This document shows positions 388 through 48,770 of a stretch of 64,000 nucleotides of DNA, piece by piece (positions within the stretch are counted from its first letter, which is position 1; each line of letters begins with the position of its first letter). The position numbers and the translations under genes were made by a program. Source of the stretch: Guillardia theta CCMP2712 (lineage: Eukaryota; Protista; Cryptophyta); the NCBI RefSeq assembly GCF_000315625.1, contig NW_005434657.1, positions 21,539 through 85,538 on the forward strand, in the 5' to 3' direction. A model generated the notes under the pieces. It made no database searches, was not told the DNA's origin, and saw only the letters and a program-made list of their open reading frames with translations.

Positions 388-475
388 GATCAAACAACCG
401 TTTCTGCACAGAAAAATATCCTGTTCAGCACCCTAGCTCGCAGGGATCCCCTCAAACTGCAGGGGAGGAGAGCAT

Positions 476-1077
476 GTCTGTTACTCCAGCGGTCTGTCTG
501 TTACTCCAGCGGTCTGTCTGTTACTCCAGCGGTCTGTCTGTTACTCCAGCGGTCTGTCTGTTACTCCAGCGGTCTGTCTGTTACTCCAGCGGTCTGTCTG
601 TTACTCCAGCGGTCTGTCTGTTACTCCAGCGGTCTGTCTGTTACTCCAGCGGTCTGTCTGTTACTCCAGCGGTCTGTCTGTTACTCCAGCGGTCTGTCTG
701 TTACTCCAGCGGTCTGTCTGTTACTCCAGCGGTCTGTCTGTTACTCCAGCGGTCTGTCTGTTACTCCAGCGGTCTGTCTGTTACTCCAGCGGTCTGTCTG
801 TTACTCCAGCGGTCTGTCTGTTACTCCAGCGGTCTGTCTGTTACTCCAGCGGTCTGTCTGTTACTCCAGCGGTCTCTGTCTGTTACTCCAGCGGTCTTGT
901 CTGTTACTCCAGCGGTCTGTCTGTTACTCCAGCGGTCTGTCTGTTACTCCAGCGGTCTGTCTGTTACTCCAGCGGTCTGTCTGTTACTCCAGCGGTCTGT
1001 CTGTTACTCCAGCGGTCTGTCTGTTACTCCAGCGGTCTGTCTGTTACTCCAGCGGTCTGTCTGTTACTCCAGCGGTC
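476..1077. repeat. 20-bp minisatellite (GTCTGTTACTCCAGCGGTCT)~30 in the 5' leader of unit A
   Basis: Directly visible, near-perfect tandem array with two small slips near 875-900. Confidence 0.97.
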
Positions 1078-1107
1078 TCCTAAGCGCTGCCTGGAATAAC
1101 CGGCGCT

Positions 1108-1123
1108 CCTAAACCCTAAACCC
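1108..1123. repeat. Short telomeric spacer (about 2 CCCTAAA units) between units A and B
   Basis: cctaaa ccctaaa ccc. Confidence 0.85.
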
Positions 1124-1315
1124 TATTATTATTATTATTATTATTATTATTATGTGAGTTTATTAGAATGCTAGAATGTTGCTCGGCCTCGTTGTGGGCT
1201 TATGCAATTTGATCCTAGTCTAAAGAGGCGCTCGAGCACTGGGAGTACACGGCCTACAATGCGAAACCTGCTTCTGAGGCGTCTTTCTACTTTCTACTTT
1301 TGCTGTCTTCTCTTG

Positions 1316-3740: not shown

Positions 3741-3816
3741 GCCGAAAATAACGGCGCCTGCCGAAAATAACGGCGCCTGCCGAAAATAACGGCGCCTGCC
3801 GAAAATAACGGCGCCT
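3741..3816. repeat. 4 x 19-bp repeat GCCGAAAATAACGGCGCCT at the 5' end of unit B
   Basis: Four perfect tandem copies abutting the telomeric tract. Confidence 0.97.
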
Positions 3817-3900
3817 CCTAAACCCTAAACCCTAAACCCTAAACCCTAAACCATAAACCCTAAACCATAAACCCTAAACCCTAAACCCTAAACCCTAAAC
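3817..3900. repeat. Interstitial telomeric tract (CCCTAAA)~12 with two CCATAAA variants
   Basis: Directly visible. Confidence 0.97.
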
Positions 3901-4970
3901 TAGTGAGCTCGACTGCAAACGTCTCTCTGAGCTTGACGTCGTCGCTGATGAGAGTGAGATGCACCCCCTCCATCGCCTCGCTCTCTCTGAACGAGGCCAA
4001 GGTCTGCTCGCAGCTTGCCGTCGAAGGCGAGCTCAGCACCCACTCTAGCTCTCTCTGCTGGAGAGTTCCAGTACTTGCCCCAACAGCAACATACGTCTTC
4101 GGGCTCGGCCCCTTGCGACCTCTCTGCCCAGGACCCTGCACGAGCATGCCCGCAAGTGGTTGTACCTCTGCGGCTGCAAGAGATTGCGAGAGCAGCTGAA
4201 ATCGATAGATCTGAGCGATCTCAGCCGTCGACATTCCTCCAAGAGCTAAGAGCTGCGATAGCTCGGCAAGGCTCCCTCCCTTGCCCCAAGGTCCTCGCTT
4301 GGCTCGAAGCTTGAACGACCGGTCATGTGCAATGCTCACCTCTGTGGCTCGAAAAGCTCTCCCTTCGATGGCGTATTCTGTCCTGCCATCGACTGAGTCT
4401 ACCATGAGACCTAGCTCCATAAGCTTCGTTTTCAACTTTTCTTCTTGTCGAACATACATCGAGGAAATCCCTAGGAGAGTCATGGAGATGAAGGAGGTCC
4501 CCTCGGTGCCTTCGGTGCCGATGTATGTCTCGACATTCTGCTTCTTGGCCTCCTCCATCTGTTGAATAAACCATGCTCTCGACTCTGAGCTCCATTCGCT
4601 CAGAGAGTCTTCAAACAGGTCGCGTCTCGCCTGCCGACATGTCGAGCGGATGGCTTCAGCGATAGCGTCGGGAGTGCATCCCCCCTCAGCTCTGCAAGCA
4701 TGAGCTGTCCGACTATTCGGATAACGCTTGGCGAAGTTCTTCACCTTCTCGACGAGGTCGGCGGCCTCCTCGACGTGGCCTCCAGAGCGCTCACCCTGCG
4801 TGTATTGGCATGATCTCCGATACAGCAGGTTGCGAACGCTCTCATCATACTGTAGTACCATGCTTAGAAAGCTGTTTGAACTATACGAACCTCTTGCTCG
4901 CAGCTTCCACCGGTCCCCTTGCGCTCTCCCTACGCGCCGCAGGGCAGCATGCTCTTACTAAGGGCTGGCT
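3901..4970 (-). mobile_element. Telomere-associated element, unit C: 3'-truncated and capped by telomeric repeats
   Basis: ORF 3881-4861 is colinear with the N-terminal half of the unit B protein up to AVELT, then runs into TTTAGGG repeats (SLGFRV*). It lacks a ~39-aa segment present in B. Confidence 0.75.
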
Positions 4971-5145
4971 CCTAAACCCTAAACCCTAAACCCTAAACCC
5001 TAAACCCTCAACCCTAAACCCTCAACCCTCAACCCTAAACCCTAAACCCTCAACCCTCAACCCTAAACCCTCAACCCTAAACCCTAAATCCTAGGCGTAT
5101 AACCCTGAACCCTAAAAACCCTGAACCTAAAAACCCAAAAACAAC
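4971..5145. repeat. Proximal telomeric tract, CCCTAAA mixed with CCCTCAA, degenerating inward
   Basis: Clean repeats 4971-5094, degenerate to about 5145; typical inner edge of a telomere. Confidence 0.95.
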
Positions 5146-11450: not shown

Positions 11451-12561
11451 GGGGGAAAGAGCCAATCCAATTTGGGAAGGATGAGACTGACATGGAGGAT
11501 GAGAATGATATAAAGCGGGTTGAAGATGAGATGAAGGAGAGAAATAACAAAGGATTTCTGGTCCAGTAGTTGTTAAGCTCTGGCGTGGAATGCGAAAAGC
11601 AAGAGGTAATCATGTAGTAGGCTGAGTGAGGAAAAAGAGGAGGGAAAATACAAAGACAGCATTACAGGCAGGAGAGAGGATGGTGAAGGCAAGGGAAGAA
11701 GTAAGGAGGGGGAGGGGGAAGGGGTGAGTAGGGAGTAATTGGTGGCTGTATATGCGAAGAAGGCTGACAATTTTGAACAAGACTGAGTCGAGCATGACGC
11801 CGAAGCGATGGATTGCCGCGGGGCAGATGGGGGGTGGGTAGGTATGTGTGATAGGGTGGGTGACATGTTGAGATTGGACAGGGGTAGGAGGACTGCGGGT
11901 ATGGAAATCACGGGCAAATCACGGGGTGGTGCGCTGGTAGTACCATGGTGGTTGTAGGAAAAGGTGGGTAGTGATGATGAAGTGATGGTTCTCAAACAGT
12001 TGATGGTGAGGTGATGGAAAAAGGTGGGGTCCTTTGGTCTTGGAGGTGGGCATACACCCCGTCGCTTTAGGGTGAAGCGGGGGTTGTGAAATGGTAAAGA
12101 AGGCAAGTCGAATTGGAGGGTAGGGTAGACGTGGAGTGGCAGTCTGGACGCAGGATGAAAGTAGGTGGGGTTCTCTAAAAGGTAGGGGTAGGGGTATAAG
12201 ATCGAGGGTTGTCGGGGGGATGCATCTGGTCACGATTTGAATCATGTAACGGGAGTAGCATTTGTGTTGGGTGGGGGAGGGGGTTCGAGAAACCCTCGAA
12301 AACATCTAGAACACTGGGGGTAGGGTGTACAGATGGTTGGGTGGGGTCAACGAGGTCACGATTTGAAACGGTCTTAGGAAAGCTATGACAAAGGGCATAT
12401 GTAACAACAAGATACGATACTAAGACCAAGGAGGTTGGTACCTGCTATCACCCTCTGGTAGGATGGGGAGGTAGGGAGGGAGTTTAGGGGAATGGTGACC
12501 CTACCTACCCATATATCCCCCCTATATTTACCACAACACCGGTACTGACATAGCGCCGGGG

Positions 12562-13608
12562 AACAGGCCCATGACTTTGAGTAAACCATTGGACTTTTTA
12601 CTCAAAGTTAAGTTAAAAATCAGGACGAGGACCATGACTTCTGCTGCGGTTTGGAGGCCGGGTCGGGGTCGGGGGTACTAGTCTGAGTAAAAAGAGTCTC
12701 GGACTCGAGTCCGACCTTGGGGCGACTCGAGTTATTATCAAGTTCACAGGCTGATGATTCGAGTCTGCGGCCCGGCCGGCCCGGCGGTCCGGTCGGCGCG
12801 GCCGCCGCGCGGAGTCCGATCCCTTTTACTCAAAGTCCGATCAATGCGGCCCGGCGGGCCCTTGAAGAGACGACGGTCTTTCATTTCAGTCCCGCCGGGG
12901 CGGCCGGTCACCGGGCACCGGGCATTCGGCCCATATCATCATGATCGGGATCCGGAGCCTCCGAGTCCGATATGGCCGGGCCGCCGAGTACCGGGCCCCG
13001 GCCCCGGCGGCGGACTCCGGCCCGCCGGACTCGGGATGCGTGCCGTGCCACCCGCCCGGCCCCGGGCCGCCGCCGCCGCACGGTCACCCCGATCCGACTC
13101 GCGCCCCCCCCCGGCGGCCCCCGCCGCCGCCGCGTGACTGCCGCAAAAAAACGGTGATTTTATGTAATTACTCAAAAATCATTTCTGGTACAAAAATTCA
13201 AACCAGGCAGCCCACCCCGCCCACTGTTTGAAAGAACTGAGGTACCCCAATTGATGCCCGTGACGGATCGGACGCCGGGTGTGCCTGACTCGCCTGCGGC
13301 CTGCGCCGCACCGGGGCCCGGCCGGCGGGCGGCAGCGGGCGGCAGCGGCATAGCCGCCGGGCTATGCCGCTGGGGGCCCCGGCTAGCCAGTGATCACTAG
13401 CCGGGGGCCCCGGCTAGTGATCGGCGGACTGGAGTACCGGCGGCCGCGCGTTCCGACCGCTGGACTCTCATCCGGCGGTCAGAACAAGGTCACGGTGCCG
13501 TGACAACTGGCGGCACAGTGCACAACCGCCGCCTCCAAATCACTGACGCGGCCAAGTTGGAACGGACTCGAGCCGCCGCCTTCAATGTTTCAGTGCCGCA
13601 ACTTGCCA
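12562..13608. repeat. GC-rich palindrome-dense island beginning with the TTTACTCAAAGTTAAGTTAAAA family motif; appears to resume at 20201-20620
   Basis: Motif shared with 26493 and 27078; palindromes or hairpins at 12699-12714, 13343-13372 and 13392-13422. Confidence 0.6.
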
Positions 13609-14058
13609 TGATGGAACGTATGCCAGCCGTGCCAGTCAGATAGCGCCGAGTTAACAAAAACTCTCCTGTAAACCAAGACGACTTACGTGGCAGGCGGCCA
13701 ATGTAGCGTATGGGACGAAGAGGGGGTCTTTCCTAGCCGTCTTGCTAAGGTCCTCTCATGTCTGGATGCTTGGGTTTCACATCCTAGTGTTGTATCCATG
13801 AGGATCCGGAACCACGGATACTCGTCGGATACTCTGCCGGATATTCCCTATATAGGCGGACGCATCTCGTGCGGACGGCCTCCTGAATGTCCCCCACTTG
13901 CATGCACAGTGAGTGTGGTGGTTGTGCGTAGTTTACCTCCTAGTAAACTTAGAGACTTCTATTTCCTGCTTCTCAATCTCCTTCATCCTTACTTTACTCG
14001 TGTCGTTGACAATCTCTGTGTTGTGTATACAACATTCTGGAAGCGAAGTGGTTGATTC

Positions 14059-15597
14059 ATGACCTCGAAACAAGGAAGAGGAGGAAAGAAACCTCAGCCG
14101 GAAAGGAGCCCTCAACCTCGATCTAAGCAATCAGGAGCATTTCAAACAGAAATTGCTGAAGAGAGTTCTGAGGAAGAAGTCGAATGGAGCGAGCGGCTGC
14201 AGCTGCAGCAGCAGCAGCTTTCTCCGAGTCAGACCAGTGGATCTTTGACTCAACCTTATAGGGATGGAGTACAACGTGAAGCGCTGTCTAGCGCGGATCA
14301 ACGGGCCCGAAACAAGAGGGATACTCCCTTGCGAAGTATTCTGCGATCAGAGGAGGCAACTCAGAGAGCAGCCTCCCCTGCAACATCGGTACGTCTGCCA
14401 AGCTCGGAAAATTTTTCATCCGACCCCGTCATGTCCTCGCCAGTGGCGCAGGACCGAGCTCTTCTCCTTCTTCGTCGAATGTGTGCCCTCCTGGCTGACA
14501 CCATGCAGGACGAGCGTTTCCACATGCTCGCCAATGCTGCAGACGAATTTGCGACAGCCGACGCTGCTGCAACACCAGAGCTCCCGCATCTCGCACGGAA
14601 AGTTACCCTGCAAGATGCTAATGCTGATATCTATTCAGCTGAGGAATCAGCTAGCGCTGAATCCTCTGATCAGGAACCAGTCCTCTCCAATCGGACTCTC
14701 GTGAATGTGCTAACGAACTCCAAGAGTTTCAATTCCAGCCGCATTCCGATGTACAAAGGTTTTGCTGATCCCCGCTCTGTCGAAGAATTCCTTCGTCAGT
14801 GCAACCGCGAATTAATCGCTCAAGAGATCCCAACTCGCAAATGGGTGAAGAGCATCACGCCGTTGTTCACCAACGAAGTGATGGTGGTGGTAGAACGTAA
14901 GTACGGAAAGAGTCTCGAGGCCATCAACAAGCTTAAATGGGATGAATTTTCAACTCATCTAAGTTCGTGTCTAGCCCCAATGCGGCAAGCCAAGAATTAT
15001 CAGACTCAGCTTGATCAGCTCAAGCAGCAGCCCAACGAATCCGCCTGGGCGTACTTGACTCGCGCCACGACACTCTTCGCAACGCTCGAATCGCAGGTAG
15101 GGTCTGCCATCCTGTACTTCAACGATCAGCCACTCCGGAAATTCATCAAGGGATTTTCGCATACGCCGACGCGCACGTCTATCCACACATGGTTTACGAT
15201 TTATCGCAGTCAGTACGGACACGGAGAAGACATGTTCTCTCGCCTAGTCACTTTCATCACAGCTCTTCTGGACGATGGTGAACCGCTAACAGTGTCTAAG
15301 CAGCCTAACTCAGCTGCTGCTAACGCTGCGCAGACCTCTTCGCACACGAAGGCCAAAGCCAACGGTGGGCAGAACAAGAAGAAGTCCAACGGTAAAGAAA
15401 ACCAGCGCAAGCAGAAGTCCATCCGTTGTTTTTACTGTCAAGAACCGGGTCACATCAAGCCGGACTGCGAGCAGTACAAGCGCGAAGTCGCTCTCCAACA
15501 GGAGCGCCATGAGAAACTCATGGCAACCCAGCATGAACAGCATGTTCAGCTTTTAGCTGCTCTTCAACCGCTCGCGACGCGTGCGGGAAACGAGTAG
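14059..15597 (+). CDS. gag: Retrotransposon Gag with CCHC zinc knuckle
   Basis: Retrotransposon capsid-like region (IPMYKG..VEEFL..WDEF..LKQQPNESAWAYLTR) and CFYCQEPGHIKPDC (CX2CX4HX4C). Confidence 0.92.
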   Translation: MTSKQGRGGKKPQPERSPQPRSKQSGAFQTEIAEESSEEEVEWSERLQLQQQQLSPSQTSGSLTQPYRDGVQREALSSADQRARNKRDTPLRSILRSEEATQRAASPATSVRLPSSENFSSDPVMSSPVAQDRALLLLRRMCALLADTMQDERFHMLANAADEFATADAAATPELPHLARKVTLQDANADIYSAEESASAESSDQEPVLSNRTLVNVLTNSKSFNSSRIPMYKGFADPRSVEEFLRQCNRELIAQEIPTRKWVKSITPLFTNEVMVVVERKYGKSLEAINKLKWDEFSTHLSSCLAPMRQAKNYQTQLDQLKQQPNESAWAYLTRATTLFATLESQVGSAILYFNDQPLRKFIKGFSHTPTRTSIHTWFTIYRSQYGHGEDMFSRLVTFITALLDDGEPLTVSKQPNSAAANAAQTSSHTKAKANGGQNKKKSNGKENQRKQKSIRCFYCQEPGHIKPDCEQYKREVALQQERHEKLMATQHEQHVQLLAALQPLATRAGNE

Positions 15598-15930
15598 CGG
15601 CGGCAGGCAACGAGAGGGGAGCATCACTTGCTCCTCCTGCCGCTGGTCTTTGCCCCAGCCCTCTCTTACCAGGTAGCAGCGCTTTACCTCCTCATCGGAG
15701 CTCGCTAAGCCATTTCGTGCTGCCGCCTGATCGGAACGCGTCGTGCTCAACGGCCGCGTCCCTTCCTACGGGTCAACTACATGTTTGCCCCTGCTTAGCC
15801 CTCAGCCGTGGCGACGCCTCCGCGCCGCTTCAGCTCGCCTTACCCGATCTTATTCGGCTCCCCGTTAGCGTCAGCTCTTCCCGAGTTCATGCTCACCAGA
15901 CCGTTGCCCTGCTCGATCACGGCGCGAACA
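15585..15930 (+). pseudogene. pol: pol remnant in the -1 frame, ending at the aspartic-protease active-site motif
   Basis: The -1 frame is open from the G GGA AAC slippery site (15585) to ..TVALLDHGAN, where the inverted LTR begins. Confidence 0.75.
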
Positions 15931-17199
15931 CAACACAGAGATTGTCAACGACACGAGTAAAGTAAGGATGAAGGAGATTGAGAAGCAGGAAATAGAAGTC
16001 TCTAAGTTTACTAGGAGGTAAACTACGCACAACCACCACACTCACTGCCACGGTGCATGCAAGTGGGGGACATTCAGGAGGCCGTCCGCACGAGATGCGT
16101 CCGCCTATATAGGGAATATCCGGCAGAGTATCCGACGAGTATCCGTGGTTCCGGATCCTCATGGATACAACACCTAGCATACAGTCTATCTCTCATGTGC
16201 TCCTCAATTCTGGTTTTGTGTGCATTAAACTCGGTCTTGAGCAAAAACTGTCTTGTTACAACTAAGGTCGATGTGATATCTGCGTGACTTTGGACTAGTA
16301 CAAGTCTAACAAACTTGTATTCCGTCGGTTATGAGCCTCGATTACATGCTCAATCATGTTGATCTTATATTTGGTTAGTTGAATTGTTTACTGGAGTTTT
16401 TTCTTTCTTGGTATTGTTTTCCGTTACTGTTGAAAAATTCATGCAAATTCTATCAAGCTTTACACATTCGGATGACTCCTCTCTTCAATCAGGCTCTCTT
16501 TCTAGCCGCAAGTTGTTTAGGCCTCTCATCTCAGCCTCAATTTGTTTGATTGATCTTCGAATAGGAAAAAACAAGCCTTTCCCCAGCCAGATTGGTCGGT
16601 CGAATATCTGCTTAACCGTGTGGAAACGCACTTGAAGCTGATTCGATTCTTATTTTCTTGATCTTTGAGTAGGACTCCATAGCGTTGCTTTTCCGGCCGG
16701 GCGCTCATAGGAAAAATTGGCAAGATTTTTTTTTTTTCGAAGGGCCTGAGGGGTCCCTTCATTTCATGCCATGTGGGAGTACCCTACTTTGAGAAGGCGT
16801 GTGGGAGGGTACTCGCTCTTAGGAAAATCGTTGCTGCGCAGGGCCAAAGAGGGGTAGGGTGATTTGAATTTGGTTGCTTGGACACCTCACCACGCCAAAC
16901 CAAAGTAAAAGTACGAATTTTAGAAGTATCTGTGGTACCAACTTAATATTGCAGCGTTTATATGGTACAAAACGAGGGCCAAACTGGTCGGAACTTCGAC
17001 TTCCGAGAACCCCTCCGTTTGACTTTCGTTGGGGGGTGGGGTGGGTATGGAGCACCCTCAACTACCCACCTTTGAACCAGTTTGAAACTCTGTGATAGGG
17101 GGTGGGGGGTAGCCCCCATTTCTCATTCCCCAAGCCCCCTCTCCCTGGACGAGCAAGAGGCGATGAAATGGTGCCTTCCTGACTCGCGAGGATGAACCT

Positions 17200-19017
17200 T
17201 GATATTGAGAGACTTCGAATCTAACCCAACTGAGATAGGAATGAGATGAAGATCTCATATCATACCTGTAAGAGATGATCGAGCTTCTTTCTCAACTCTG
17301 CAGGTTGGGCCAAGGTTTGAATCATCCATCGTGTACTGATATATGCACCCTAGGTACAAACAATCCGCGTGTGTACTTGAAAATATTCCTCAAAGACAAG
17401 ATGAAATTTTCATGAACAGCTAAGCAACTAATGATAGATTCACCATTGAACAGAATCAACTCTGATTGACCCTTCTTTCAAATTGCCGTAGGTTGAACGT
17501 TGAGCTCAAATGCATGATTTGTGAGAAATTTGTATCAAACTGTACCTTAAGCGACTTTGCTGTCTAGATATGTGTTCTCATGTCATCACTCACTTTCAAT
17601 TCTTCTAATCTTACGGTCAGGATTCATGCACCTCACTTTTCTATAGAGAAAGCTTTACATGCTCAACCGTTCAATGATGCATGAAGAGACGTTTGCACAA
17701 AGGATTTCTTTACCTGCTAGGATAGATGACTTTGAATCATCGTTGTTGATCATGAATCACTATACCCATGATCAAGTGCATTGACAATTGCATTTCCATG
17801 TTTCATGACGTTGGATGATTTTTCTGTACTGCAACTAAGTTCTTCCTCTGTCATGACATTTCCACAACGCTGCAGAAACCTAGTTAGAAATGAAACAATG
17901 TGCAGATGAATCTGATATCAATAAATGAGATGTTCTTCGAATCAATCCTGCCTTGTTTGGACAGTTCGCAATGCTACCATGCAACAGTAGAGTTCTTGTC
18001 GCATTTGGCTCTACAGAGGGGTGCCTTGTTCAACAGAGCAAGCACTCGATGATTGTAAACGAACCACAAACACTGTGAATCAATAAACAGAATTCCACAT
18101 TCAGGTGATCATATCTTTATTACAAGCGTTTCAATCTGGGTAAAAGCACAACTGACCTCCTTGTAATCCTGACGACGTTCCATCTTTTGCCTGGCGAAGT
18201 TATTTCTGTGTTAACCAAGAAGCATGTGACATGTAGCCACATCATAAATGCTGTACGGCCTGGAATATCAGCATCTTCAAAGTGCTCGTGTTTGCTGTGA
18301 CCGTATCATCTGCTTGGCAGCGGCTCATTGATGGACACACGATCTGATGCAAGTTCACACCAGTAATATTTAGATGATGCATCATGTGATCAAATGGCAT
18401 AGACTTTGGTGATTTGCAACATGTTTCATCGTTCCAACACATCCTTGAAAACCGGATGAAGAATCCTTCACGAACCACTGGACTTGCTTGTTATCATTCG
18501 ATAGTGCTGTGGACCATCGTGGTTTCAAGCAATCGAGCAGCTCACTGCTAAAATGCACTGTATTTCTTGCGAGCCTATCAGCCATCATCGTGAAGACATG
18601 TGTTCTTGAGCTCACTGGTGACTGTACGGCTTTTGAACAATCCAGTCACCGTCGGATGATGATTCCCTGTCGTCTTGTGTGTAATCTCCATCCATCTACT
18701 CCAACTCAGTTTCCCTGTCATGCATCGCAGATAGCTTAGGGTATTTCACAACCCGGTTTCGATTGCAACGTATCCCTGTGATGGTGATTTTCACTTGTAT
18801 TATTGATGCTCTTCGCTCACCAAACGATTTTTCGTGAGATCCACGCACTGTACGAAGCACTCCTCAAGGATCATCATCTCTACACCTCAGGAATTTCCCA
18901 TGAGGAGGTTCGGTGAACATCTGATGTCTGCACACGCTGCCGCGGGCTCGCTGTTTGCGAGCCATGGTTAGGGCAGTACAGAGCGGTGCGACGTGCCCCG
19001 AACAAGGGGAGGCTCAT
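17200..19017 (-). CDS. Putative intron-rich cargo gene, antisense within the Copia element
   Basis: ATG 19017 gives MSLPLFGARRTALYCPNHG..WEIPE, followed by repeated ~40-50-nt GT..AG intervals on the minus strand. Product not recognised. Confidence 0.35.
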
Positions 19018-20753
19018 GGCGTGTAGAGAGGTCGTTCAAACTTGTTTATAAAATTGTACCATAAGAAGGCTCTACAAATTAGTTAGTAGACTACCCCATG
19101 ATCTCAGTGCAACTTCTGGGGTGCAGCCCTACTTCTCTGTTTATACTCAACCATTCCACAATACAGTTTAAAATATCTTTTTGGAAAACAACATCAGAGT
19201 TATAAACCTGAAATTTGAACCCTGTTTGAAATCCTCAAACACGCCACCCCCCAATCCACATAGAAAGCAGACCAACCCCCTCACGGGAAAACATACAGCC
19301 CAAAGCAGAAAAAGCAAAATGGCAACGCTATGGGAGTCAAATGGAACTACCAGGAGATCTGGCGGAAGTTTTCATGTCATGGAGCTAGGCTGTGGCATGC
19401 ATAACTGGAGCTACTTCTGGATCGGCGAACAAGGTACTACTGCACAACAATCTTCAGATGCCTTGAAACGGATGTTCCAATCTCGCGGCAGCAATCTCTG
19501 GTCACAAGTTCTTTACGGTTCAAAATTTATCTTTTGGTCTTCAAATGCCGGCGGGCACGCTCTCTCTCTCTCTCTCTCTCTCTCTGTTATCTGAACTCCG
19601 AAGTTCTCTCCTCAGACTCTCTTATCTTATCCTCCTTCTCTCGTCATTGCATCAGCTCGCCAGGCATCTCCCTTATCTCTGCACTGCACATCTAATAGCC
19701 CTGCATGAAAATCTTCTTCAGAATGGACAATCCTTGAATGGTTATTGCCCACTCAGCATGACTGTGAACTTGACGTTGTATCGTCGTATCTTGACTTGGA
19801 TCTGCTGACATTCTTGTTTGCGTGACTTTCTGACGTCCGATGTAACGTACTATTTCAGAAACTCGGGGGGAGGATGGAACGTATGCCAGCCGTGCCAGTC
19901 AGATAGCGCCGAGTTAACAAAAACTCTCCTGTAAACCAAGACGACTTACGTGGCAGGCGGCCAATGTAGCGTATGGGACGAAGAGGGGGTCTTTCCTAGC
20001 CGTCTTGCTAAGGTCCTCTCATGTCTGGATGCTTGGGTTTCACATCCTAGCATACAGTCTATCTCTCATGTGCTCCTCAATTCTGGTTTTGTGTGCATTA
20101 AACTCGGTCTTGAGCAAAAACTGTCTTGTTACAACTAAGGTCGATGTGATATCTGCGTGACTTTGGACTAGTACAAGTCTAACAAACTTGTATTCCGTCA
20201 CAACTTGCCCGGCCCTGAATCAGGCTCGCGGCGGCAGCCGCGCACTGCATCTGAGGCTGAGACTCTGCACCGGACGGTCACGCCGGGCCGGGCCCAGTAA
20301 GCCCGGGAAGTTGGAGTCTGGTCACAAGAAGCCTACGGTTCTTTATGTTTCACGGTTCAAAATAGTTAACTTTTGGTCCGTCTTGAACTCGTCAATGATT
20401 TGACGCCCGGCCAGCAGTGAGGCTGGCCGGGCGGGAAAGCTTCTCTCTTCACTGAACCGTGCCTTATCACTTATTGCTGGCCGGTCCGATCTGTGAACGG
20501 AGTTACTAAGTTCTCGGAGGCTCGGCAACGCCCGTCCGACGGTCCGTCAGGAGCCGCGGGGCCGCCACCGGGCCCGGCGGCCGGGCAGTGACCGTACCGG
20601 CTCGGCTCAACAGGGTCGGAGCCCACAAAGACTACCCCTGATTTATTGGGAAGGTAAATGGGGGGTCCTACAGGGTGGTTCTATATCCGGTTGATGGCGC
20701 CAGAAATGTCGCATGATTACTGCAACAGCTGTGCAGGAGAGGAAAGAAGGGGA

Positions 20754-21175
20754 AGAGAGATCAGGGCAGAAAGATCTGGCAGACCAGGGGAGAGAGATCA
20801 GGGCAGAAAGATCTGGCAGACCAGGGGAGAGAGATCAGGGCAGAAAGATCTGATAGACCAGGGAGAGAGATCAGGGCAGAAAGATCTGATAGACCAGGGA
20901 GAGAGATCAGGGCAGAAAGATCTGATAGACCAGGGAAGAGAGATCAGGGCAGAAAGATCTGGCAGACCAGGGGAGAGAGATCAGGGCAGAAAGATCTGGC
21001 AGACCAGGGGAGAGAGATCAGGGCAGAAAGATCTGGCAGACCAGGGAGAGAGATCAGGGCAGAAAGATCTGATAGACCAGGGAAGAGAGATCAGGGCAGA
21101 AAGATCTGGCAGACCAGGGGAGAGAGATCAGGGCAGAAAGATCTGATAGACCAGGGAGGAGATCAGGGCAGAAAG
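20754..21175. repeat. ~30-31-bp minisatellite (GAGAGATCAGGGCAGAAAGATCTGGCAGACCAGG and TGATAG variant), about 14 copies
   Basis: Directly visible tandem array. Confidence 0.95.
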
Positions 21176-22269
21176 AAGCGGTAAACTTATCTGGATGATA
21201 AGAGGAGGAGGAGGAGGCGGCGGCGGCAGCAGCAACAACAATAAAAGAATACTCTTCATTTTTGACGGGTTCTAATCGCGGTTTCGTATTCCTTTTCAAC
21301 AGAATGTTCAGCAACTTGCGCCAATTCCAAGAGATGAATTCATCCTTTGCTCACTTGCAGTCACTCGACTTGGGTAGAATGTCGGTGAGGCCCCTCCCTC
21401 CACTTCTACTACTATTTAACCCCTGTCCTGTCAGCCCCAGCAGCAGAAGCAGTTTGCCGTCGAGTTCTGCACGACGAGTTACCGCACTGAGATGGAGGTG
21501 AGGGATGTGCTCTCCTTTGTGCATCCATTTTTGCAATGACAAGAAGAAGTCGAGGGTGATATTGCTGCTGCTGCTGCTGCTGCTGCTGCTTGATGCTTGT
21601 TATGATGACAATCAGGGAGAAGGAGGTGAAATTGGGAACCATGACAGTGATGACAGCCGTGAAAATAATGATGAATAGTTGTGTTGCGGATTTGAAAACG
21701 ATATTGATTAATTTTGTCCAGCAAAAACACTGTATGGAGAAAATCTTCAGCGGTAATTTATCTTGTTGGCTATCATATCATGACGAATGAGCAGGAAACA
21801 TGCAGTTCGAAGACTCTCTTACGACCATGGGATAATCATGAGTTCGTTATTTATGATTTTGTTACAAACTCTGTTCTTTGCCACAAAATGGAGACGTAGA
21901 ACGAAGAAAGAATAATTATCGGCGATTCTTTTCCATGCCAGAAGGACCTGCAGCTAATGTCCTGAACCTCGTTCATTCAGATTTCTTCACAATCGTTCAG
22001 TGCTACTTCTTGATGAGCAGTGATTCTTCGCCCGCACCATCACCGGACTCAAATTCCAGAGAGCCTTCGCTCCTTTCACCTACTTCGACTGGAAGTGAGT
22101 AGAGTCATAGGAAGAGGAAACTCGCGACCCCTGCTGTCGCTGCTGCTCGCGCTAATCAGGGCCTGGAAGACGCGGATCGTTCATCTCTCGCGCAGGCAGC
22201 ACGAGACCACTCACAGACGGTTTGGGTGGCGTCATGATAACCTCGCGCTGGCAACAGCTGAGTGGAGCT

Positions 22270-27370: not shown

Positions 27371-29371
27371 GCCATTCGTGTAACCATGCTGACATGCTGA
27401 TGGACCTTCTGGTCAGGGACTATGGTGGAGCAAGATGAGGGAAACTCGAGGGGCCCCTGGAGGAGGGCAGTTGAGAGGACGCGATGATGAAAGGGAATGA
27501 AAGAGGACTGGGAAGGGTTAACACAGCAGAGAACTTGAGGGAGGAGAGCATAGAGAGTATTAGGAAATGAAGTGCGAAAACATTCAGGGTTTGTAAATTG
27601 AACCGAGGGGTTGAACTTGTTCTCTTCTCCAGGTTTTTGTTATCGAAGCTTTATGTGGTAATTTTCGTTTGTTGTTGAGGACACAATCTATCTAGGATTT
27701 CTCAGCGAGCAGTCAATGTGCATACATGATATTTTGAAGGGTCGTGGCATTTGGGAAAACTTGTTTCATACAAGGAGGACATCTTATCACGTCGTAAAGA
27801 AGTACACGAGAATTGTCCCGTCTAAAACCAACAGCTCTCACTGGCAGAAAGAAACTGATGCGGGAAAAACAGATGACTCTATACCAGGTGGGTGGGAGGC
27901 ATGAGCAGGAAGATTTCTCACGTGGCATGACTAGGATTCGTTGTCATCTCGGTGATATCCAAGAGAAACTTGGGGTACTCCACCAGACATTCTTTCATGC
28001 GTTAGCTGATTTCACTGAGCTAGGCGTGCATGTCCAAGACAGCGTCCGAGACCATTCAGGACAAAGCGGACTGGTATGCAGGATCAAATGCTTGAATCAT
28101 CCCCTCATTTTTCACAACACACAGGAGGAAAGGGTAACAAAAACGTCAGAACCAATTACTTGTTGGGCTTGGACGATTGATGCAAACAGACAGCTCGATT
28201 AAACCCATAACTTTAGTCCTTACACTCAGAGAAAAAGCTTGTACAGCATAGGCCTGCTAAATTACAGCCAACACACTGGCAACGATCATCTGTTCTGCCT
28301 CATCAAGAGGTTTTTTTTGCGCAGCGATTTGCCAGTGAGGCGAGAAGTCTGGTTTCCTGAAACCAATCAAATCACTAAAGATGTGGGAAACTAGACGTCA
28401 CGTACATGTCCTGTTCTTGCACCACTGATCAAGAAGAACGCGCTCATCTTCATGGTTTCAGCATTGAATTGAAGACATACATGATTACGAAGCATGTCGG
28501 ACTGTGCGGCATTCTGAGCTTGATTGTGAAATCGTCCGTCTCATCACTGATGGCGGTGAGCAACAGTTGAGGTAAAAAAATGCAAATTCCACCTGGAAAT
28601 CCTGTTATGCTTGAGTTCTTTGTTCTTTGTTCGAAAGACATGCAGCCTAGGGAAAGAAAGAAATCAAGTAGAGCGCGCCGAATCACGAGTACAAGGCAAA
28701 AAATGACGCAAGAACCTGCGATACAGGAAGTGGCTCCTAATCCAAATTGCGATAGCAGTATGCAATTCATCTGAGTTCTCAATATACGGTAGCAAGTTTC
28801 CAAAAGCGATGGCAGGAGGGTCCATGGGAGGTTGACACCTTCATATAAACCCTAGAAACAGACAAGTAAGAAAGAAATATCAAATCCATGTTTGAAATGG
28901 ATGTTGCTGTTTCAACTTTGTACCTCTTGCTGTTGGCCCTCGTACTCTTCAAGGATCACTTGAGCTCAGGCTACTAGTTCTCCATGCTATCACCCATTCA
29001 GATCAATCTCATGTCCCTCCCTCCGCTTCCCTGCCCTTGCAAAACGTGCACTGTCGGCACCGCTAAGTACATGGCTGCATTCTTTCAGGTAGTACCAAGA
29101 TGATGGGAGACCAGACGCAACCCCTACCCCAGACCAGACCCCAGACAGTACCCCAGACCCAGCCGCTCAGCCTGAGACCCAGCCCCAGAGCAGCCCCAGA
29201 CCTTTACCCAGACCCCTACCATCCCATGTACCATCCTGCCTACCAGTACCCCCATAATTTATACTACTCGAAGGGGTAGAAGAACTTTCAGTTGGAAATC
29301 GGTCCGCTTAGCAGGACTGTGAGTTGCCAACCGTCTCACATGCTCTCTATCGAGCTCTTCTCTCGTGCTCT

Positions 29372-30012
29372 TCATACTCTCTCTATCTCATACTCTCTCT
29401 ATCTCATACTCTCTCTATCTCATACTCTCTCTATCTCATACTCTCTCTATCTCATACTCTCTATCTCATACCCTCTCTATCTCATACCCTCTCTATCTCA
29501 TACTCTCTCTATCTCATACTCTCTCTATCTCATACTCTCTCTATCTCATACTCTGTCTATCTCATACTCTCTCTATCTCATACTCTCTCTATATCATACT
29601 CTCTCTATCTCATACTCTCTCTATCTCATACTCTCTCTATCTCATACTCTCTCTATCTCATACTCTCTCTATCTCATACTCTGTCTATCTCATACTCTCT
29701 CTATCTCATACTCTCTCTATCTCATACTCTCTCTATCTCATACTCTGTCTATCTCATACTCTCTCTATCTCATACTCTCTCTATCTCATACTCTCTCTAT
29801 CTCATACTCTCTCTATATCATACTCTCTCTATCTCATACTCTCTCTATCTCATACTCTCTCTATCTCATACTCTCTCTATATCATACTCTCTCTATCTCA
29901 TACTCTCTCTATATCATACTCTCTCTATCTCATACCCTCTCTATCTCATACTCTCTCTATCTCATACTCTCTCTATTTCATACTCTGTCTATCTCATACC
30001 CTCTCTATCTCA
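29372..30012. repeat. 16-bp minisatellite (ATCTCATACTCTCTCT)~40
   Basis: Directly visible; explains three spurious overlapping ORFs. Confidence 0.97.
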
Positions 30013-30165
30013 CGTTCTATATCTGCTCATGCTCCTTGTCTACTCATGCTCTAGTATCGTGGCTCTCCTACTGTTTGATAGTGATGATAGTAACAAGGAT
30101 GAACATGACGACACTGATTGACAAAGACGTCGGACCATGATCACGAGACGACGACGACGACGAGT

Positions 30166-35274: not shown

Positions 35275-35889
35275 ATGGCTCAAGTTGGCGGAGGCGCTGG
35301 AAGCGGAGGAGGAGACTGCATGAGGTGTGGAGGAGGAGGACGGAAGCGCTGCTCAGCATGCAAGAGGGTCGTGTACTGCTCGAGAGACTGCCAGAGGTTG
35401 GACTGGGAGAGGCACAAGCAGGAATGCAATAAGGAGCAGATGAAGTGGAGAGCAGGTGGTGGCAGGGAGGAGTCGCTAAAGGATTGGAAGCGAGAAGAAG
35501 GAGAAATGGCCGTTGATGCATTGCAAGACCATGACTCTCCCTTCTTCCGATCTTCTCTGCGCGTCGCCAACGTTCCGGGCTCCTCCTCTCCATCCCCATC
35601 ACCACCCGGTTCTCCTCTCACGAGTGGGATTCGCATCCTGGCAGACGGGACCCATCAGATGTTCGTGGCAGGAAGGATGTGCGACCGAGACGGTTTCCCC
35701 CTCCCCCTGGAGAGCAAGTTGTCGAGGCCCGAAGTGCGCGTCGTCCCTTGTGTGGGGTGCGGTGGGCAGGGGAGGGTGTCCACAACATGTGACGGGATAG
35801 TGAGAACTGAGTACTGCAGCAAGTGCGAGGGAGAAGGAGCCATCGTCATGAGCTATGGCGCAATGGAGACGAACAGGTCGGTTGCATGA
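35275..35889 (+). CDS. MYND zinc-finger protein with C-terminal CxxCxGxG (DnaJ-type) zinc finger
   Basis: CMRC..CSACKRVVYCSRDCQRLDWERHKQEC; CVGCGGQG...CSKCEGEG. Confidence 0.85.
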   Translation: MAQVGGGAGSGGGDCMRCGGGGRKRCSACKRVVYCSRDCQRLDWERHKQECNKEQMKWRAGGGREESLKDWKREEGEMAVDALQDHDSPFFRSSLRVANVPGSSSPSPSPPGSPLTSGIRILADGTHQMFVAGRMCDRDGFPLPLESKLSRPEVRVVPCVGCGGQGRVSTTCDGIVRTEYCSKCEGEGAIVMSYGAMETNRSVA

Positions 35890-35991
35890 GGGTAGGAGGC
35901 ACATGAAATAGACTTGTACACCTTAATTGTTTATCGCAATGGCTCAACCTGTACCAATGATTGCCACATGGTGCATCCCATGGCGGGAGGA

Positions 35992-38411
35992 TCATCGAAT
36001 GGCAGATGAAACGACGTTTGCGAGCCTGCGTTTCACACTGTGAGCGAAGTGCCGACCTACCTCACGGCACCTGAAGGTGGGATGAGCGTATCGGAGGGTG
36101 TGGAGCAGCCAAAGGAAGGAGGAAAGAACCTGCGAGAGACGGGGGTCAGAGCTCATGACTAACACCTTGATGAGACGATCGTCCATACCACAAGAGATCC
36201 AGCTTGATGCGATGCTGCAAGCTCTACTGGAACTCCTCCCCACAAAGTTCCAACGCCGAGGCTGATTTGCAGGAGCAGAGCGCCTGGAGCGCCGTGAGAC
36301 TCTTGCGATGACAAGAGACTGAACTATCAGAGGCGTGAGCCAACCTGCTACCAGCCGCATCGCGTTGTTGACACGCTTAGGGAGCTTGATGCTGCTGGCC
36401 ATGTAGAATGTGGCGAGAGCGCCTGCACCGGGTGTCTATCAAGGATGAAAGGAGGAAGCTTTCTCTAACCCGTCAGTGTGGAGTAGGCCAGCATGCGATG
36501 GTTGAACTGAACAGCAGGAATGTGCTCTGTGAAGTTCCTCCATCCCAATCGGTCCTCCCACAGATCCTTTTTCTCGCATCAGATCAAAATTTTCTCCCTC
36601 TTTTACCCTCTTCGCAAACCTTTGGGATGAATCTTCCTCCCATCAGCGGCCAATCATTGTAGGCAAGGCCTGCATGATTTCCTGCCACAAATCCTCCAGA
36701 GAAGGCCGTCAACCCTGCAAACGCTGCAGCTCCATGGGCGACCTGCCTGCATGAACGTGACCAAGCATTCATACATCGAATCTTCAAACCTGAACCACCA
36801 CATCTTCTTTGCCGTCTGGTCGCAAGCAGTTGCAATTCGACGCTTGTCGATGAGACCAAGTCCTATAGACAAAGTGATCAATAGAAGCTCGTTTCTCCAC
36901 AGCTGCGCACCAAACCAAAAGAGAAGCATGTAGATTGTAATCGCCGAGGAAAGGTGAGCGGTCAACCTACATGAAGAGAATAAATATTCGAAAAATAGCC
37001 TTTTGAAGCACCTGTATGGGCTGACAGCTGCAAATTGAGTGTTGAACTGCCAATCTTCTGCAGATTCCTACAGCAACAGACCGACAATAAGACAAATAGA
37101 AAATATTCAAATCGTTCACCAATTGCATCTTTTCTTTCTGCAGACCGCTTTTGACCATCCACCATCCAACAAGTCCTTGCAACCCTCCGAGAGTAAACAA
37201 GAAACCGACTTGTTTCTATGATTGCAGCAATCTGAGTTCAGAGCGCTAACAATCTTTTTCATCACCGGAATGGGCCCTTTCAAGTATCCTCGTGAAGCGA
37301 AGTAAACCAGAGGAACGGTGAAAACAACCCCGATCAGACTGCAGCTGAATCAGGCGGTATTCAAACCTCTGTCAACCTTCACCGTCCGAACATACGATGA
37401 GACCACTCCATGTAGTAGATGAACTTGAAATCTTGAAGAGTAAAGTTTTCATATTGACGTTTCATTATCCACTCGGGGTATGTCTTGAATTCCTACCATG
37501 CTGTAAGAGCAGAAAGTCACCTTGAAATTTTATACCTCAAACTCTGCCATCCACTCTTCTTCTGTCATCGGCGGAATCTCACTGCAGCCTTGTCTCAACA
37601 CCACAAGTGCCATCTCTCATCTCACCTATGTGGCTTCCATTTGACCATGGACAAACCGGAACCAGTGAGACGCGTCAATCCACCAAGAACGACCATGGCA
37701 ATGACCTGTATTGGTTCAAGTCAGTATCGGGCAACAACCAATCCTTGATCACCATGCCAGAAACTACAATCAACCAGTAGCCTACTGAGCGATCGCCTTT
37801 GCTGTACCAGACTCCTTCCAGTTGAACGATGTTGGTATCGTCAAGTTTCTAAGAAATCATAAGACATTTTCTGCTGAACATGTCAGTACCTGATGCTCTG
37901 GCACAGCTGATGTTGACAAATGCTTCTGCTCCCCGATCGCAGCTGACGAATTCTATGACTTCCCAGTAAGAATCGGCAAGCAAGAGTGGTTGTCCGTCAG
38001 TCACATGAGGTCTATTCGATGGCAACAGTCTCGACAGGACATGAGAGTTCACACCTTGAATCACGAATGACTATCCTGAGGAAATTCCAATATCATCTTT
38101 CTCACCAGGTTGTATCAGCCGTTTACATGCGTCCCCCAGGCCAAGATATCGATTCTGGATGTGACTGAAGCTCCGCGTCGTAAGCGTGATGTGCGGCTTG
38201 ACGGTGAACTACTTCAGCTCTCAGCCTTCGATACACACCAACACAATTTTGATCAGCTTGACCTTATAGCTTGTTGACAGCGTGGAATAGTGAGATCGGA
38301 AACTAGAGGAGAGACGGCTGAATTTGTGAGGATTATCATGAGACCAGACTAAAATCAAGACTTACCTCTGCAACGAACGGACGCAATCCACATTCCCTCG
38401 TAGGGCCTGCA
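35992..38411 (-). CDS. COX15: Heme A synthase (cytochrome c oxidase assembly protein COX15), multi-exon
   Basis: Exons encode [76 protein letters not shown] and QFNHRML. Start approximate. Confidence 0.93.
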
Positions 38412-46020: not shown

Positions 46021-46434
46021 TCCTGTCATCCTTGACAGAGGCTATTCGGAACTACACTCCATCCTCCGGATGCACGACAAAACGATCCTTATCGTGATTG
46101 TCCCACCTGCAAATCCCCAGAGCCTCAAGAGCAGTCAAGAAATACGAGAGCTTGAGAAAGTGAACCCTTGCCATTGTCAGCTGTCCGTCCGTTTGATCTT
46201 GATATAGATTGATTACGTCGTAGCCACCTTCAACCTCGATGATGAAATGAAGGAACACCCTGTTGTGCGGAAGAAAGTAATGTGTCTCTTGACAGATCAA
46301 AGTTGAAAACAAAAAGGGGTCCAGGGCTGTCAGGCAGCCGGAGACATCTCGTCGTCAAGCGCAAGTACTCGAGATCAAGCGTTCATTACTAGCTTCTACG
46401 TAGTTACATGCTCGTGTCTAGTCTAGAGCGTTTC

Positions 46435-47193
46435 CTACTCCGTCCTGTCTGCCTTGGGTGCTTGTAGAGCTGCACGGTCGGTCGTAGTAGGATGCTGGAT
46501 GGCGATGGGGGTCCGGCGGGTCGATCGCTTCCGGCGGGCTTCCTCTCTTGCTGCTCGGAGCTCGCTCTCCAGACCGACGAGGTCCCGGCGCTCACGGCGG
46601 AGCTCCTCCGTCAGCTCGGCGACTCGAGCGCGCTTGCTGGCACAAGTCTCTTTGAGCCGGCGGGCTTCCTCGGACAGCTCGTCGTCCTCGCTGGTGCTGC
46701 GATCGGCAGGCTGGCGTCGGGCTACCTCGATCCGAAGCTGGCCGTCACAGTACTCCGAGCGGATGTCGCCGGGGTCGCAGTCTGCAGGGAGGACGATGCG
46801 CTGGCGGAGGCGAAGGGACGATCGGTCGGGGTGAGCACCAGGGGCTTGAGCAGCCTCGTCGTCCAGACGAGCGTCAGCTGCCGCGGAGGTGGGTGAGATG
46901 CTCGACGAGGCTACCAGCTCTAGCGTCCGGTCGCCTACCAGGCTCAGCGCGAGGTCTCCCGCGGGTACTCCGGGCGTGTCCATGGTCACCACGTGCCTGT
47001 CCGGGCGAGACTCGATACGAGGCATGGCAGCGGTGTCAAGAAGCCGGGAGGCTGAGACGCGGTCGTACCAGGACGGCTGCAGGTCGTCCCAGACCGAGTC
47101 GAGGTCAGACAGGAGCGAGACCGAGGGGTAAGACAAGCGAGGGGTAGGAGCGAGGAGCATGTCGAGAGGACGGGCAGCGAGAAGGGAGAGCAT
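46435..47193 (-). CDS. Small heat-shock protein type A (alpha-crystallin domain + coiled-coil extension), copy 1
   Basis: VVTMDTPGV..DLALSL..TLEL..QRIVLPADCDPGDIRSEYCDGQLRIEVAR; C-terminal PIAI (IXI) motif. Confidence 0.85.
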   Translation of the reverse strand: MLSLLAARPLDMLLAPTPRLSYPSVSLLSDLDSVWDDLQPSWYDRVSASRLLDTAAMPRIESRPDRHVVTMDTPGVPAGDLALSLVGDRTLELVASSSISPTSAAADARLDDEAAQAPGAHPDRSSLRLRQRIVLPADCDPGDIRSEYCDGQLRIEVARRQPADRSTSEDDELSEEARRLKETCASKRARVAELTEELRRERRDLVGLESELRAAREEARRKRSTRRTPIAIQHPTTTDRAALQAPKADRTE

Positions 47194-47320
47194 GGGATCA
47201 GTAAGCAGGAGTGAAGCAGAGAGTCGTGTCGAGAGAGAGAAAGAGTGGGTTGGGTGTGGGATGGGTTGGGAGGGTCGACGGGAGATGGGGAGGAGATATA
47301 GAGGGAGGAGGGGGGACGTG

Positions 47321-47333
47321 GAAAGATCGAGAA
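47321..47333. promoter_or_regulatory. Candidate heat-shock element in the bidirectional promoter (present in every unit)
   Basis: GAA-ag-ATC-ga-GAA, one mismatch from GAAnnTTCnnGAA; TATA-like GATATAGAG near 47295. Confidence 0.5.
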
Positions 47334-47536
47334 TACCGGGGTGACAGGGTGTTTCTAAAAATAGTGTTTGTACGGAGGTTTGTGTGTATTTTTAGACTCA
47401 GTTTTGCTGGTCTACGGTACTACCCCTCATCCCTACCCAGCCTCCCAGCACCCCTCCCCCCTCCTTCCTTCCATCCTCCCCTTGCCTTCTTATCCGAGTC
47501 GCCCGACAGCTTGCGGACCTCAGCCAGTAGCTTGCG

Positions 47537-48238
47537 ATGATGCCGCGTAGCTCGTCCTCGTGCGCGTCCTGTCCTCTGTCGCGTCCCTCGATCCTTCTTC
47601 TTGCTCTCCTAGGCTTGATCATGCTCTCCTCGTCCTCCGCCTTCCTCGTCACTCCGAGCGCCTTCATGCTGGACCCCTACCGACCGTTGTCGGCGTCGCT
47701 TCCTAGCAGCCCGCGTCAGATCCTGTCGACGATGAGCCGGCTGGAGCAGGAGATGGACCGCATGCTCGACTCCGTCATGGATGTCACCGGCGGCTTCCTC
47801 CTCCCGGACGAGGCCTGTCGCGACCCGCCTGCGAGTCCCGTCACCAACGACCCTAGCCCCTCGGACGGGGAGGGAGGAGGGGCGGTGATGCGGCTGCGGC
47901 CTCACTTTGACATCCAGTCGACCTCCGATCGTCTCCTCGTCACCGCCGCTACCCCGGGCCTCGCCAAGGACGACATCGCCGTCGAGGTCCTCGAGGCCAC
48001 AGGCGACGTCCCCCCGACCCTAGTCATCTCCGGCCGCTCGTCCTCCAAGCAGACGTCGGAGGAGCCGGCGCGAGTCCAAGCGTCGTATGCGGCGTTTGAG
48101 AAGCGCGTCTCCCTCCCTCCCCACACAAAGCCCGACATGGTCGAGGCCAAGTACGACAACGGAGTCCTCCGAGTGTCCGTCAAGCGACCCGAGGAGGAGC
48201 TAAAGGCGCCTCCGCGGCACAGGATCCCTCTGCTCTAG
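47537..48238 (+). CDS. Small heat-shock protein type B with signal peptide + Phe leader (putative plastid-targeted), copy 1
   Basis: ILLLALLGLIMLSSSSA-FL; PHFDI..LVTAATPGLAKDDIAVEV..LVISGR..FEKRVSLP..VEAKYDNGVLRVSVKR; RIPL tail. Confidence 0.9.
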   Translation: MMPRSSSSCASCPLSRPSILLLALLGLIMLSSSSAFLVTPSAFMLDPYRPLSASLPSSPRQILSTMSRLEQEMDRMLDSVMDVTGGFLLPDEACRDPPASPVTNDPSPSDGEGGGAVMRLRPHFDIQSTSDRLLVTAATPGLAKDDIAVEVLEATGDVPPTLVISGRSSSKQTSEEPARVQASYAAFEKRVSLPPHTKPDMVEAKYDNGVLRVSVKRPEEELKAPPRHRIPLL

Positions 48239-48770
48239 CAACCAGGCTGAGAGACGGGCCGCTGACTCCCTCCTCAGGCGGCCTGCAGCCTGCACACAGC
48301 CTAGCAGGCGAGCCGTGTAGAGACTAGACCTATCTGTAGACGTTGTTGTACAATAAAGGCACGTTCCCCTACGTTGTTGTACAATAAAGGCACGTTCCCC
48401 TACCTTGCCGGGTAGACTGCGAGAGCTCAAGGAGGAGGCGAGGTGAGGTGAGGAGGGTCTGAGCGGCAGCGGCGCGGGCACCCGTGCAGACAGGCGATGG
48501 GTGGAGCGGCGGCGGGCTGCCGTACCGAGAGGCTGTAGAGTCAGGGCTTGTGTAGGCCACAGAGAGAGGAAGGAGGGGCAGGGAGGTGGCGGGGGCGAGG
48601 TACAGGAAGAGAGGGGGGCCCTCCCTCATACCTCGAGTCAGCGACAAGAAGGGGGTCCAGGGCTGTCAGGCAGCCGGAGACATCTTGTCGTCAAGCGCAA
48701 GTACTCGAGATCAAGCGTTCATTACTAGCTTCTACGTAGTTACATGCTCGTGTCTAGTCTAGAGCGTTTC

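Follow-up and report, generated by a model that had tools for sequence, protein, structure and literature searches.

An inverted long terminal repeat between exact target-site duplications in a defective chromovirus copy of Guillardia theta

Structure of the element

The 64,000-nucleotide stretch of Guillardia theta CCMP2712 DNA analyzed here (the window, JH992981.1:21539-85538) contains a defective retrotransposon copy whose second long terminal repeat (LTR) is inverted. Scaffold JH992981.1 matches the window at 100% identity over this interval, down to its two N gaps, and an HSP20 protein encoded in the window is annotated in assembly GCA_000315625.1. By its sequence the copy belongs to the chromoviruses, the LTR retrotransposons that bear a chromodomain on the integrase. 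The copy occupies about 35321-37715 of scaffold JH992981.1 and consists, from left to right, of a complete LTR, a putative primer-binding site (PBS), an intact gag open reading frame (ORF), the start of pol and a reversed, slightly shortened LTR, all enclosed by a 5-bp target-site duplication (TSD). The features of the locus, in window coordinates, are as follows.

13783-13787, no strand: left TSD copy, CCTAG; the empty site at 20046-20050 has a single CCTAG
13788-14034, plus strand: complete LTR of 247 bp with ends TGTTGTAT...ATACAACA, which form 8-bp terminal inverted repeats
14038-14055, plus strand: putative PBS, beginning TGG, 3 nt past the LTR; conserved in the related loci L001, L002, L003 and L005
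14059-15597, plus strand: intact gag ORF of 512 aa with a CCHC zinc knuckle
15585-15591, plus strand: heptamer G GGA AAC, whose phase fits a -1 frameshift site, 4 nt upstream of the gag stop
15585-15927, plus strand: start of pol in the -1 frame, 110 codons, broken off some 13 residues inside the protease domain
15921-15927, plus strand: GGCGCGA, in agreement at 6 of 7 positions with the final 7 nt (GGAGCGA) of the family polypurine tract (PPT); pol ends directly after it
15927-15928, no strand: sole illegitimate junction, parent pol nt 2149 joined to reversed LTR nt 239, with no microhomology
15928-16172, minus strand: inverted LTR, nt 1-239, lacking the inner 8-bp repeat ATACAACA of the U5 (unique 5') side; its U3 (unique 3') terminus abuts the TSD
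16048-16053, no strand: 6-bp insertion found only in the right arm, CCACGG on the plus strand and CCGTGG in the LTR sense
16173-16177, no strand: right TSD copy, CCTAG, matching the left copy and the empty site
19873-20199, plus strand: paralogue of the target that bears no insertion; this direct repeat of 327 bp matches 13610-13787 plus 16178-16326 at 100% identity and holds the empty site, 20046-20050

The left LTR carries a TATA box (TATATA, 13849-13854). In the gag product, zf-CCHC passes the Pfam cutoff and the match to Retrotrans_gag is weak; the protein is 91-93% identical to P0001 and P0002 and 78% identical to G. theta GUITHDRAFT_101919, and an exact look-up did not find the window gag on record. 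From 15535 onward the -1 frame has no stop as far as the junction, where it ends three codons past the protease motif LLDHGA. Since this frame is open and homologous to the pol of two relatives, L003 and L005, 15585-15927 is the genuine start of pol. The active-site motif of the protease reads D-H-G, as against the usual D-T/S-G, in the two G. theta copies compared (window 15912-15926; L003:11393-11407).

Neither a PPT nor a direct 3' R/U5 (R, the repeated segment of the LTR) is present in this copy (15598-16172). Because it has no PPT and no direct 3' R, the copy cannot propagate; with its promoter and intact gag retained, it could still express Gag. No tRNA genes were present in the window or in the fetched loci for comparison with the putative PBS. 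Self-priming of the Tf1 type was considered and rejected, as the LTR holds no complement of the PBS region.

The right arm reproduces LTR nt 1-239 in reverse complement, with 100% identity save for the one 6-bp insertion, which sits within a small hairpin-forming segment of the LTR. Shuffles put the number of perfectly matched 239-bp inverted repeats expected by chance at 0, and a repeat search over 12000-18000 returned the two arms only. Moreover, every private single-nucleotide polymorphism of the left LTR, relative to L003 and L005, also occurs in the right arm, so that both arms derive from one source lineage. An earlier annotation by a model that saw the letters of the window (the sequence-only reading) had described the 247-bp left LTR, gag, the start of pol and the inverted LTR copy within 13783-16177, where all of them are present; its claim that the right copy lacks 8 inner bases and carries a 6-bp insertion near 16048 is likewise borne out by the arm alignment.

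The target site

The element interrupts one copy of a host repeat that is present, uninterrupted, a few kilobases to the right. A 41-nt probe made up of both flanks and a single CCTAG has one exact match, at 20027-20067, and both flanks agree with the paralogue at 100% identity, 13610-13787 with 19873-20050 and 16173-16326 with 20046-20199. Given this exact empty site and the identical flanks, a single 2385-bp unit was inserted with a 5-bp duplication. A nested or double insertion was rejected, as the single exact duplication and the empty site explain the whole 2385-bp insert. The insertion is young, to judge by the identity of its arms, the identity of the host repeats and the intact gag.

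The sequence-only reading had also described a CCTAG duplication confirmed by an empty site in a "sister LTR". Both copies of the duplication are indeed present, and the paralogous empty site at 20046-20050 is exact. It is the name given to the host sequence that is doubtful, the 327-bp repeat having no clean LTR-retrotransposon signature; it is still usable as a paralogous empty site. The copies of the host repeat (13599-13787 with 16178-16326, and 19873-20209) enclose a 3.5-kb core that is poor in ORFs. A GGGGGGAG run precedes the right copy, and the 9-bp sequence CAACTTGCC occurs on both outer sides of the host repeats, but offset by 2 and 1 nt.

The chromovirus family

A full-length copy with direct LTRs, such as the sequence-only reading presupposed for the parent, was found about 900 kb away on JH992981.1. 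This copy, L005:6914-12928, is intact at 6015 bp, with direct 247-bp LTRs, the TSD TACAG, an open gag of 516 aa and an open pol of 1311 aa that encodes protease (PR), reverse transcriptase (RT), RNase H, integrase (H2C2, rve and SH3 domains) and a chromodomain. The window copy (13788-15927) is 99.26% identical to it over 2149 bp, and the left LTR is 99.2% identical to both of its LTRs. From its sequence, then, at least one family copy looks functional and is probably active. A second relative with direct LTRs, L003:9282-17623 on scaffold JH992972.1, has the TSD GTGCT and is 96.9% identical to the window copy; a 2.5-kb foreign insertion breaks its RT. The order PR-RT-RNase H-integrase followed by a C-terminal chromodomain is also seen in L002.

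Both L003 and L005 possess a PPT, and the family tract ends in GGAGCGA directly before TGTTG. At the position of the junction, L003, L005 and L007 all continue uninterrupted, the family sequence there being ...GGCGCGA followed by CGATCAA.... Duplications of 5 bp flank three other insertions of the family or of a related LTR subfamily (GTGCT, TACAG and GATTG). The family encodes a DDE integrase (Integrase_H2C2, rve), and no recombinase was found in pol. As far as these sequences go, the element is a defective copy of a Ty3/Gypsy chromovirus whose family normally has direct LTRs and 5-bp TSDs.

Outside the reference genome, relatives at 87-92% identity are present among the JGI metagenome contigs (L006 and L007). 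The Logan contigs L001 and L002 and the JGI contig L006 are collapsed pol-end/LTR/gag paths that end before the junction. An exact scan of the JGI metagenome contigs with the 26-nt junction gave no match, and the window holds no second copy of it. The same kind of scan with the G. theta-type LTR start also gave no match, although exact matching misses the 87-92% relatives that are present there. No other pieces of the family, and no other Gypsy pol, were found elsewhere in the window.

Three of the related loci have peculiarities of their own. In L007:1-3883 (JGI metagenome 3300013131), pol nt 3852-5105 are inverted directly after nt 3773, and the two pol parts are 87% and 94% identical to L005; the arrangement is likely a chimera of short-read assembly, with another inversion product as the alternative. 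The insertion in the RT of L003 (L003:12522-15008, 2.5 kb) has 11-bp terminal inverted repeats, ATGCCGTTCAC and GTGAACGGCAT, and flanks GATC/GTTC; it is probably a non-autonomous DNA transposon. The solo LTR at L005:452-644, which has the TSD GATTG, belongs to a related subfamily of shorter LTRs; it is about 88% identical and lacks LTR nt ~12-59.

The inner junction

Comparison with the relatives revealed no microhomology at the join between pol and the reversed LTR, and on the LTR side exactly the 8-bp terminal repeat ATACAACA is missing. On the pol side, the last seven bases, GGCGCGA, resemble the end of the family PPT. Just 6 of the 5484 internal positions of the intact copy match that end as well (0.1% tail). 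Two features of the junction thus have a non-random look, the exact loss of the terminal repeat and the polypurine-like match, the latter being suggestive only. A conserved central PPT at this position was rejected, as L007 is without GGCGCGA. A separate site in gag, ATGGAGCGA at L005:7312-7318 (parent nt 399-405), fits the PPT end more closely than the junction site, and would be a further candidate should PPT-like sites be hotspots of aberrant joining.

Origin of the inverted arm

The copy is probably the result of one recent, dead-on-arrival, integrase-mediated insertion of a rearranged chromovirus cDNA with U3 termini at its two ends. That integrase inserted an aberrant cDNA is the best reading because the outer termini are U3 and the 5-bp TSD matches those of the relatives. 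A single illegitimate junction suffices, and both outer termini correspond to LTR nt 1. Moreover, integrase could accept both termini, since in this family U3 and U5 do not differ in their terminal 8 bp.

For the timing and chemistry of the join, we infer the following course. Before or during integration, a left-end cDNA piece (LTR, PBS, gag and the first 110 codons of pol) would have been joined tail-to-tail to a reversed piece of LTR length. The resulting linear DNA would have had a U3 terminus at each end, and an integrase of the family type would have synapsed the two ends and inserted them with the usual 5-bp stagger. Two U3 termini would be natural strand ends, one being the 5' end of PPT-primed plus-strand DNA and the other the 3' end of the minus strand. 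In the route we prefer, the join would have occurred at a plus-strand discontinuity made by the PPT-like site in the protease region. There, the 3' terminus of plus-strand LTR DNA (whose 5' end is U3 nt 1) may have been transferred onto the minus strand in an autointegration-like step; alternatively, RT may have stalled at the discontinuity in pol and carried on along such an LTR plus strand. Fill-in would then yield LTR-gag-pol' followed by the inverted LTR. The same structure could also come from end-joining of two left-end cDNA fragments, or from co-integration of the two U3 ends of two cDNAs whose tails were joined afterwards.

The sequence-only reading had offered a snap-back cDNA with two U3 ends, inserted by integrase. 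The aberrant cDNA, the U3 ends and the integrase survive in our interpretation, but the snap-back origin is not borne out. Simple snap-back priming was rejected on two counts: LTR nt 240-247 are not complementary to the 3' end of pol', and the arms differ by 6 bp. A simple self-primed hairpin, moreover, has one double-stranded end alone and is a poor substrate for integrase.

Several observations weigh against integration of a rearranged cDNA. Canonical integrase chemistry would retain the terminal ATACAACA at the inner joint, where those 8 nt are absent; no proposed route accounts for the loss of exactly 8 nt, and none explains the 6-bp difference between the arms. The two marks of an autointegration inversion product, a terminal CA at the internal site and an inverted segment, are both lacking. 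The polypurine-like match was found post hoc and is just 53% purine across 15 nt; L007, the 87% relative, does not conserve GGCGCGA. The outermost 8 bp of the right arm would look no different in a normal 3' LTR, and the assignment of U3 to the TSD rests on the orientation of the 231-bp body. A single copy has been seen, in the window and the JGI metagenome contigs together. Finally, the literature searched held no account of a Gypsy element or retrovirus integrated with a single inverted LTR and its duplication intact; one locust paper does ascribe "an inverted pair of LTRs" to a Gypsy subfamily, and the passage in question gives no supporting sequence detail.

A possible rearrangement after insertion

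The inverted arm might instead have been made in the chromosome, by rearrangement of a normal full-length element that was already inserted at CCTAG. A break or stalled fork in pol would have been followed by a template switch that copied the LTR backwards and by re-annealing via ATACAACA beside the TSD, with about 3.9 kb deleted. We regard this origin as possible but unlikely. It has the merit of giving meaning to two details of the arm: the outermost 8 bp, which read alike either way and could mask an 8-nt microhomology join, and the inner break, which falls exactly at the boundary of the 8-bp repeat. However, it calls for two illegitimate junctions rather than one, both within the very short time since insertion, and the inner junction is without microhomology. 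The PPT motif has a role in reverse transcription alone, and a chromosomal rearrangement supplies no reason for a break just after a motif that resembles it. Nor is there a displaced pol fragment in the window.

A possible source of silencing RNA

Whatever its origin, the locus might be a source of double-stranded RNA (dsRNA), through a hairpin or through convergent transcription, that silences the chromovirus family in the manner of Mu killer, the maize locus that serves as the analogy for a dsRNA silencing locus. Read-through from the left LTR would carry R-U5 together with its perfect complement, and the predicted duplex, between LTR nt 100-239 and the right arm, has an energy of -272 kcal/mol. 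The right arm holds the same TATA-containing promoter, directed inward across gag, and could give antisense gag RNA. The persistence of an intact, apparently active family copy speaks against such silencing, and a literature search on the RNA interference (RNAi) machinery of G. theta returned nothing useful. We consider a silencing role improbable. The combined scenario, in which a captured "suicide" intermediate would feed dsRNA into RNAi and so restrain the intact G. theta chromovirus family, is by our analysis very improbable.

Improbable readings: assembly artefact and propagating family

It is very unlikely that the inverted arm was falsely joined on during assembly and that the real locus is a normal element or a solo LTR. 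Repeats abound in this subtelomere-like region, and window 51443-51605 and 54292-54537 are gaps in the scaffold, but no assembly gap lies within 35 kb of the element. A false join would not restore an exact 5-bp TSD with the flank in register with the empty site; a fold-back chimera would also invert gag and the left flank, neither of which is inverted. The reference is presumably a Sanger shotgun assembly, and single reads would in that case span the 245-bp arm plus unique sequence on each side.

The other proposal of the sequence-only reading, a propagating gag-only derivative, here a non-autonomous family with inverted terminal repeats mobilized in trans by an autonomous chromovirus, is extremely improbable in spite of the intact gag, the promoter-bearing LTR and the integrase-competent termini on both sides: the copy lacks a PPT and the direct 3' R/U5 that a first strand transfer needs, the window has no second copy, the junction is not in the JGI metagenome contigs, the exact gag is not on record elsewhere, and the full-length relatives L003, L005 and L007 run through the junction.

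Significance of the insertion

If integration of a rearranged cDNA is what took place here, the locus would be a chromosomal record of an LTR-retrotransposon integrase inserting DNA with two U3 ends, and it would show that rearranged cDNAs ordinarily written off as "suicide" dead ends can still enter a genome. The anatomy of the junction, directly after a PPT-like motif and with exact loss of the terminal repeat, offers a hypothesis on where such accidents start. For a single defective copy the consequences would probably be small unless silencing RNAs are produced; a dsRNA locus, if there is one, would be the retrotransposon counterpart, in a cryptophyte, of the maize Mu killer. In addition, an intact and probably active chromovirus has been located in this model cryptophyte.

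Other features of the window

Interstitial telomere-type repeats (CCCTAAA, with CCCTCAA variants) occur at window 3787-3914 and 4969-5110, about 25 kb into JH992981.1, and suggest that the region is subtelomere-like or rearranged. Three minisatellite arrays lie at window 395-1177, 20713-21230 and 29251-30120; their periods are 20, 37 and 16 bp, respectively. The tandem array at window 46200-57650 has five units, each about 2.3 kb long and bearing two divergent HSP20 genes, of 252 aa and about 233 aa, and both assembly gaps (51443-51605 and 54292-54537) fall inside this array.

Comparison with known systems

The copy shares with the Ty3/Gypsy chromoviruses (Metaviridae) a CCHC gag, a -1 frameshift, TG...CA LTRs and a 5-bp TSD, and its intact relatives share their order of pol domains. 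It differs from them in being reduced to LTR, PBS, gag and 110 codons of pol, in lacking a PPT, and in having a second LTR that is inverted and 8 nt short. With the DIRS1-like tyrosine-recombinase retrotransposons it has in common a gag-like ORF enclosed by inverted terminal repeats. However, the family to which the copy belongs has a DDE integrase, an aspartic protease, 5-bp TSDs and, in its normal copies, direct LTRs. DIRS elements are recognized by a tyrosine recombinase, the absence of a TSD and an internal complementary region that matches the ends of the terminal repeats; here the family pol has no recombinase, a TSD is present, and the repeat search over 12000-18000 showed no such region. 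Membership of the DIRS, Penelope-like or foldback elements was rejected on the integrase type, the TSD and the direct-LTR relatives, in keeping with the sequence-only reading, which had called the element Gypsy-like rather than DIRS.

Gag-only non-autonomous LTR retrotransposons of the TR-GAG type have direct LTRs, a PBS, a PPT and many copies. The present copy resembles them in joining an LTR and gag without a functional pol, but it is single, has no PPT and has an inverted LTR.

Related precedents are known among three-LTR complexes and extrachromosomal products. Three-LTR complex insertions, which arise by template switching in reverse transcription (Sabot and Schulman 2007, PMC1950507), are likewise the outcome of an abnormal cDNA in a single event, with flanking 5-bp TSDs and near-identical outer LTRs; in those insertions all the LTRs are direct and the internal regions complete. 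The inversion products of Ty1 and retroviral "suicide" autointegration, also known as 2-LTR-inverted circles (PMC4751563, PMC7197481, citing Shoemaker 1980 and Garfinkel 2006), share with the window copy a reversed LTR joined without homology to an internal site of the cDNA. Autointegration of Ty1 is reported to occur near the central PPT flap and to give inversion products with an inverted LTR (PMC7197481, PMC4751563); Ty1 prefers a site near a central PPT, and the junction described here follows a PPT-like 7-mer. The differences are threefold. Autointegration products are extrachromosomal, dead-end circles, whereas this copy is a linear derivative that sits in a chromosome with a TSD; the autointegration joint keeps the terminal CA of the LTR, whereas here the last 8 nt of the LTR are missing; and autointegration products retain an inverted internal segment, whereas this copy has no inverted segment of pol.

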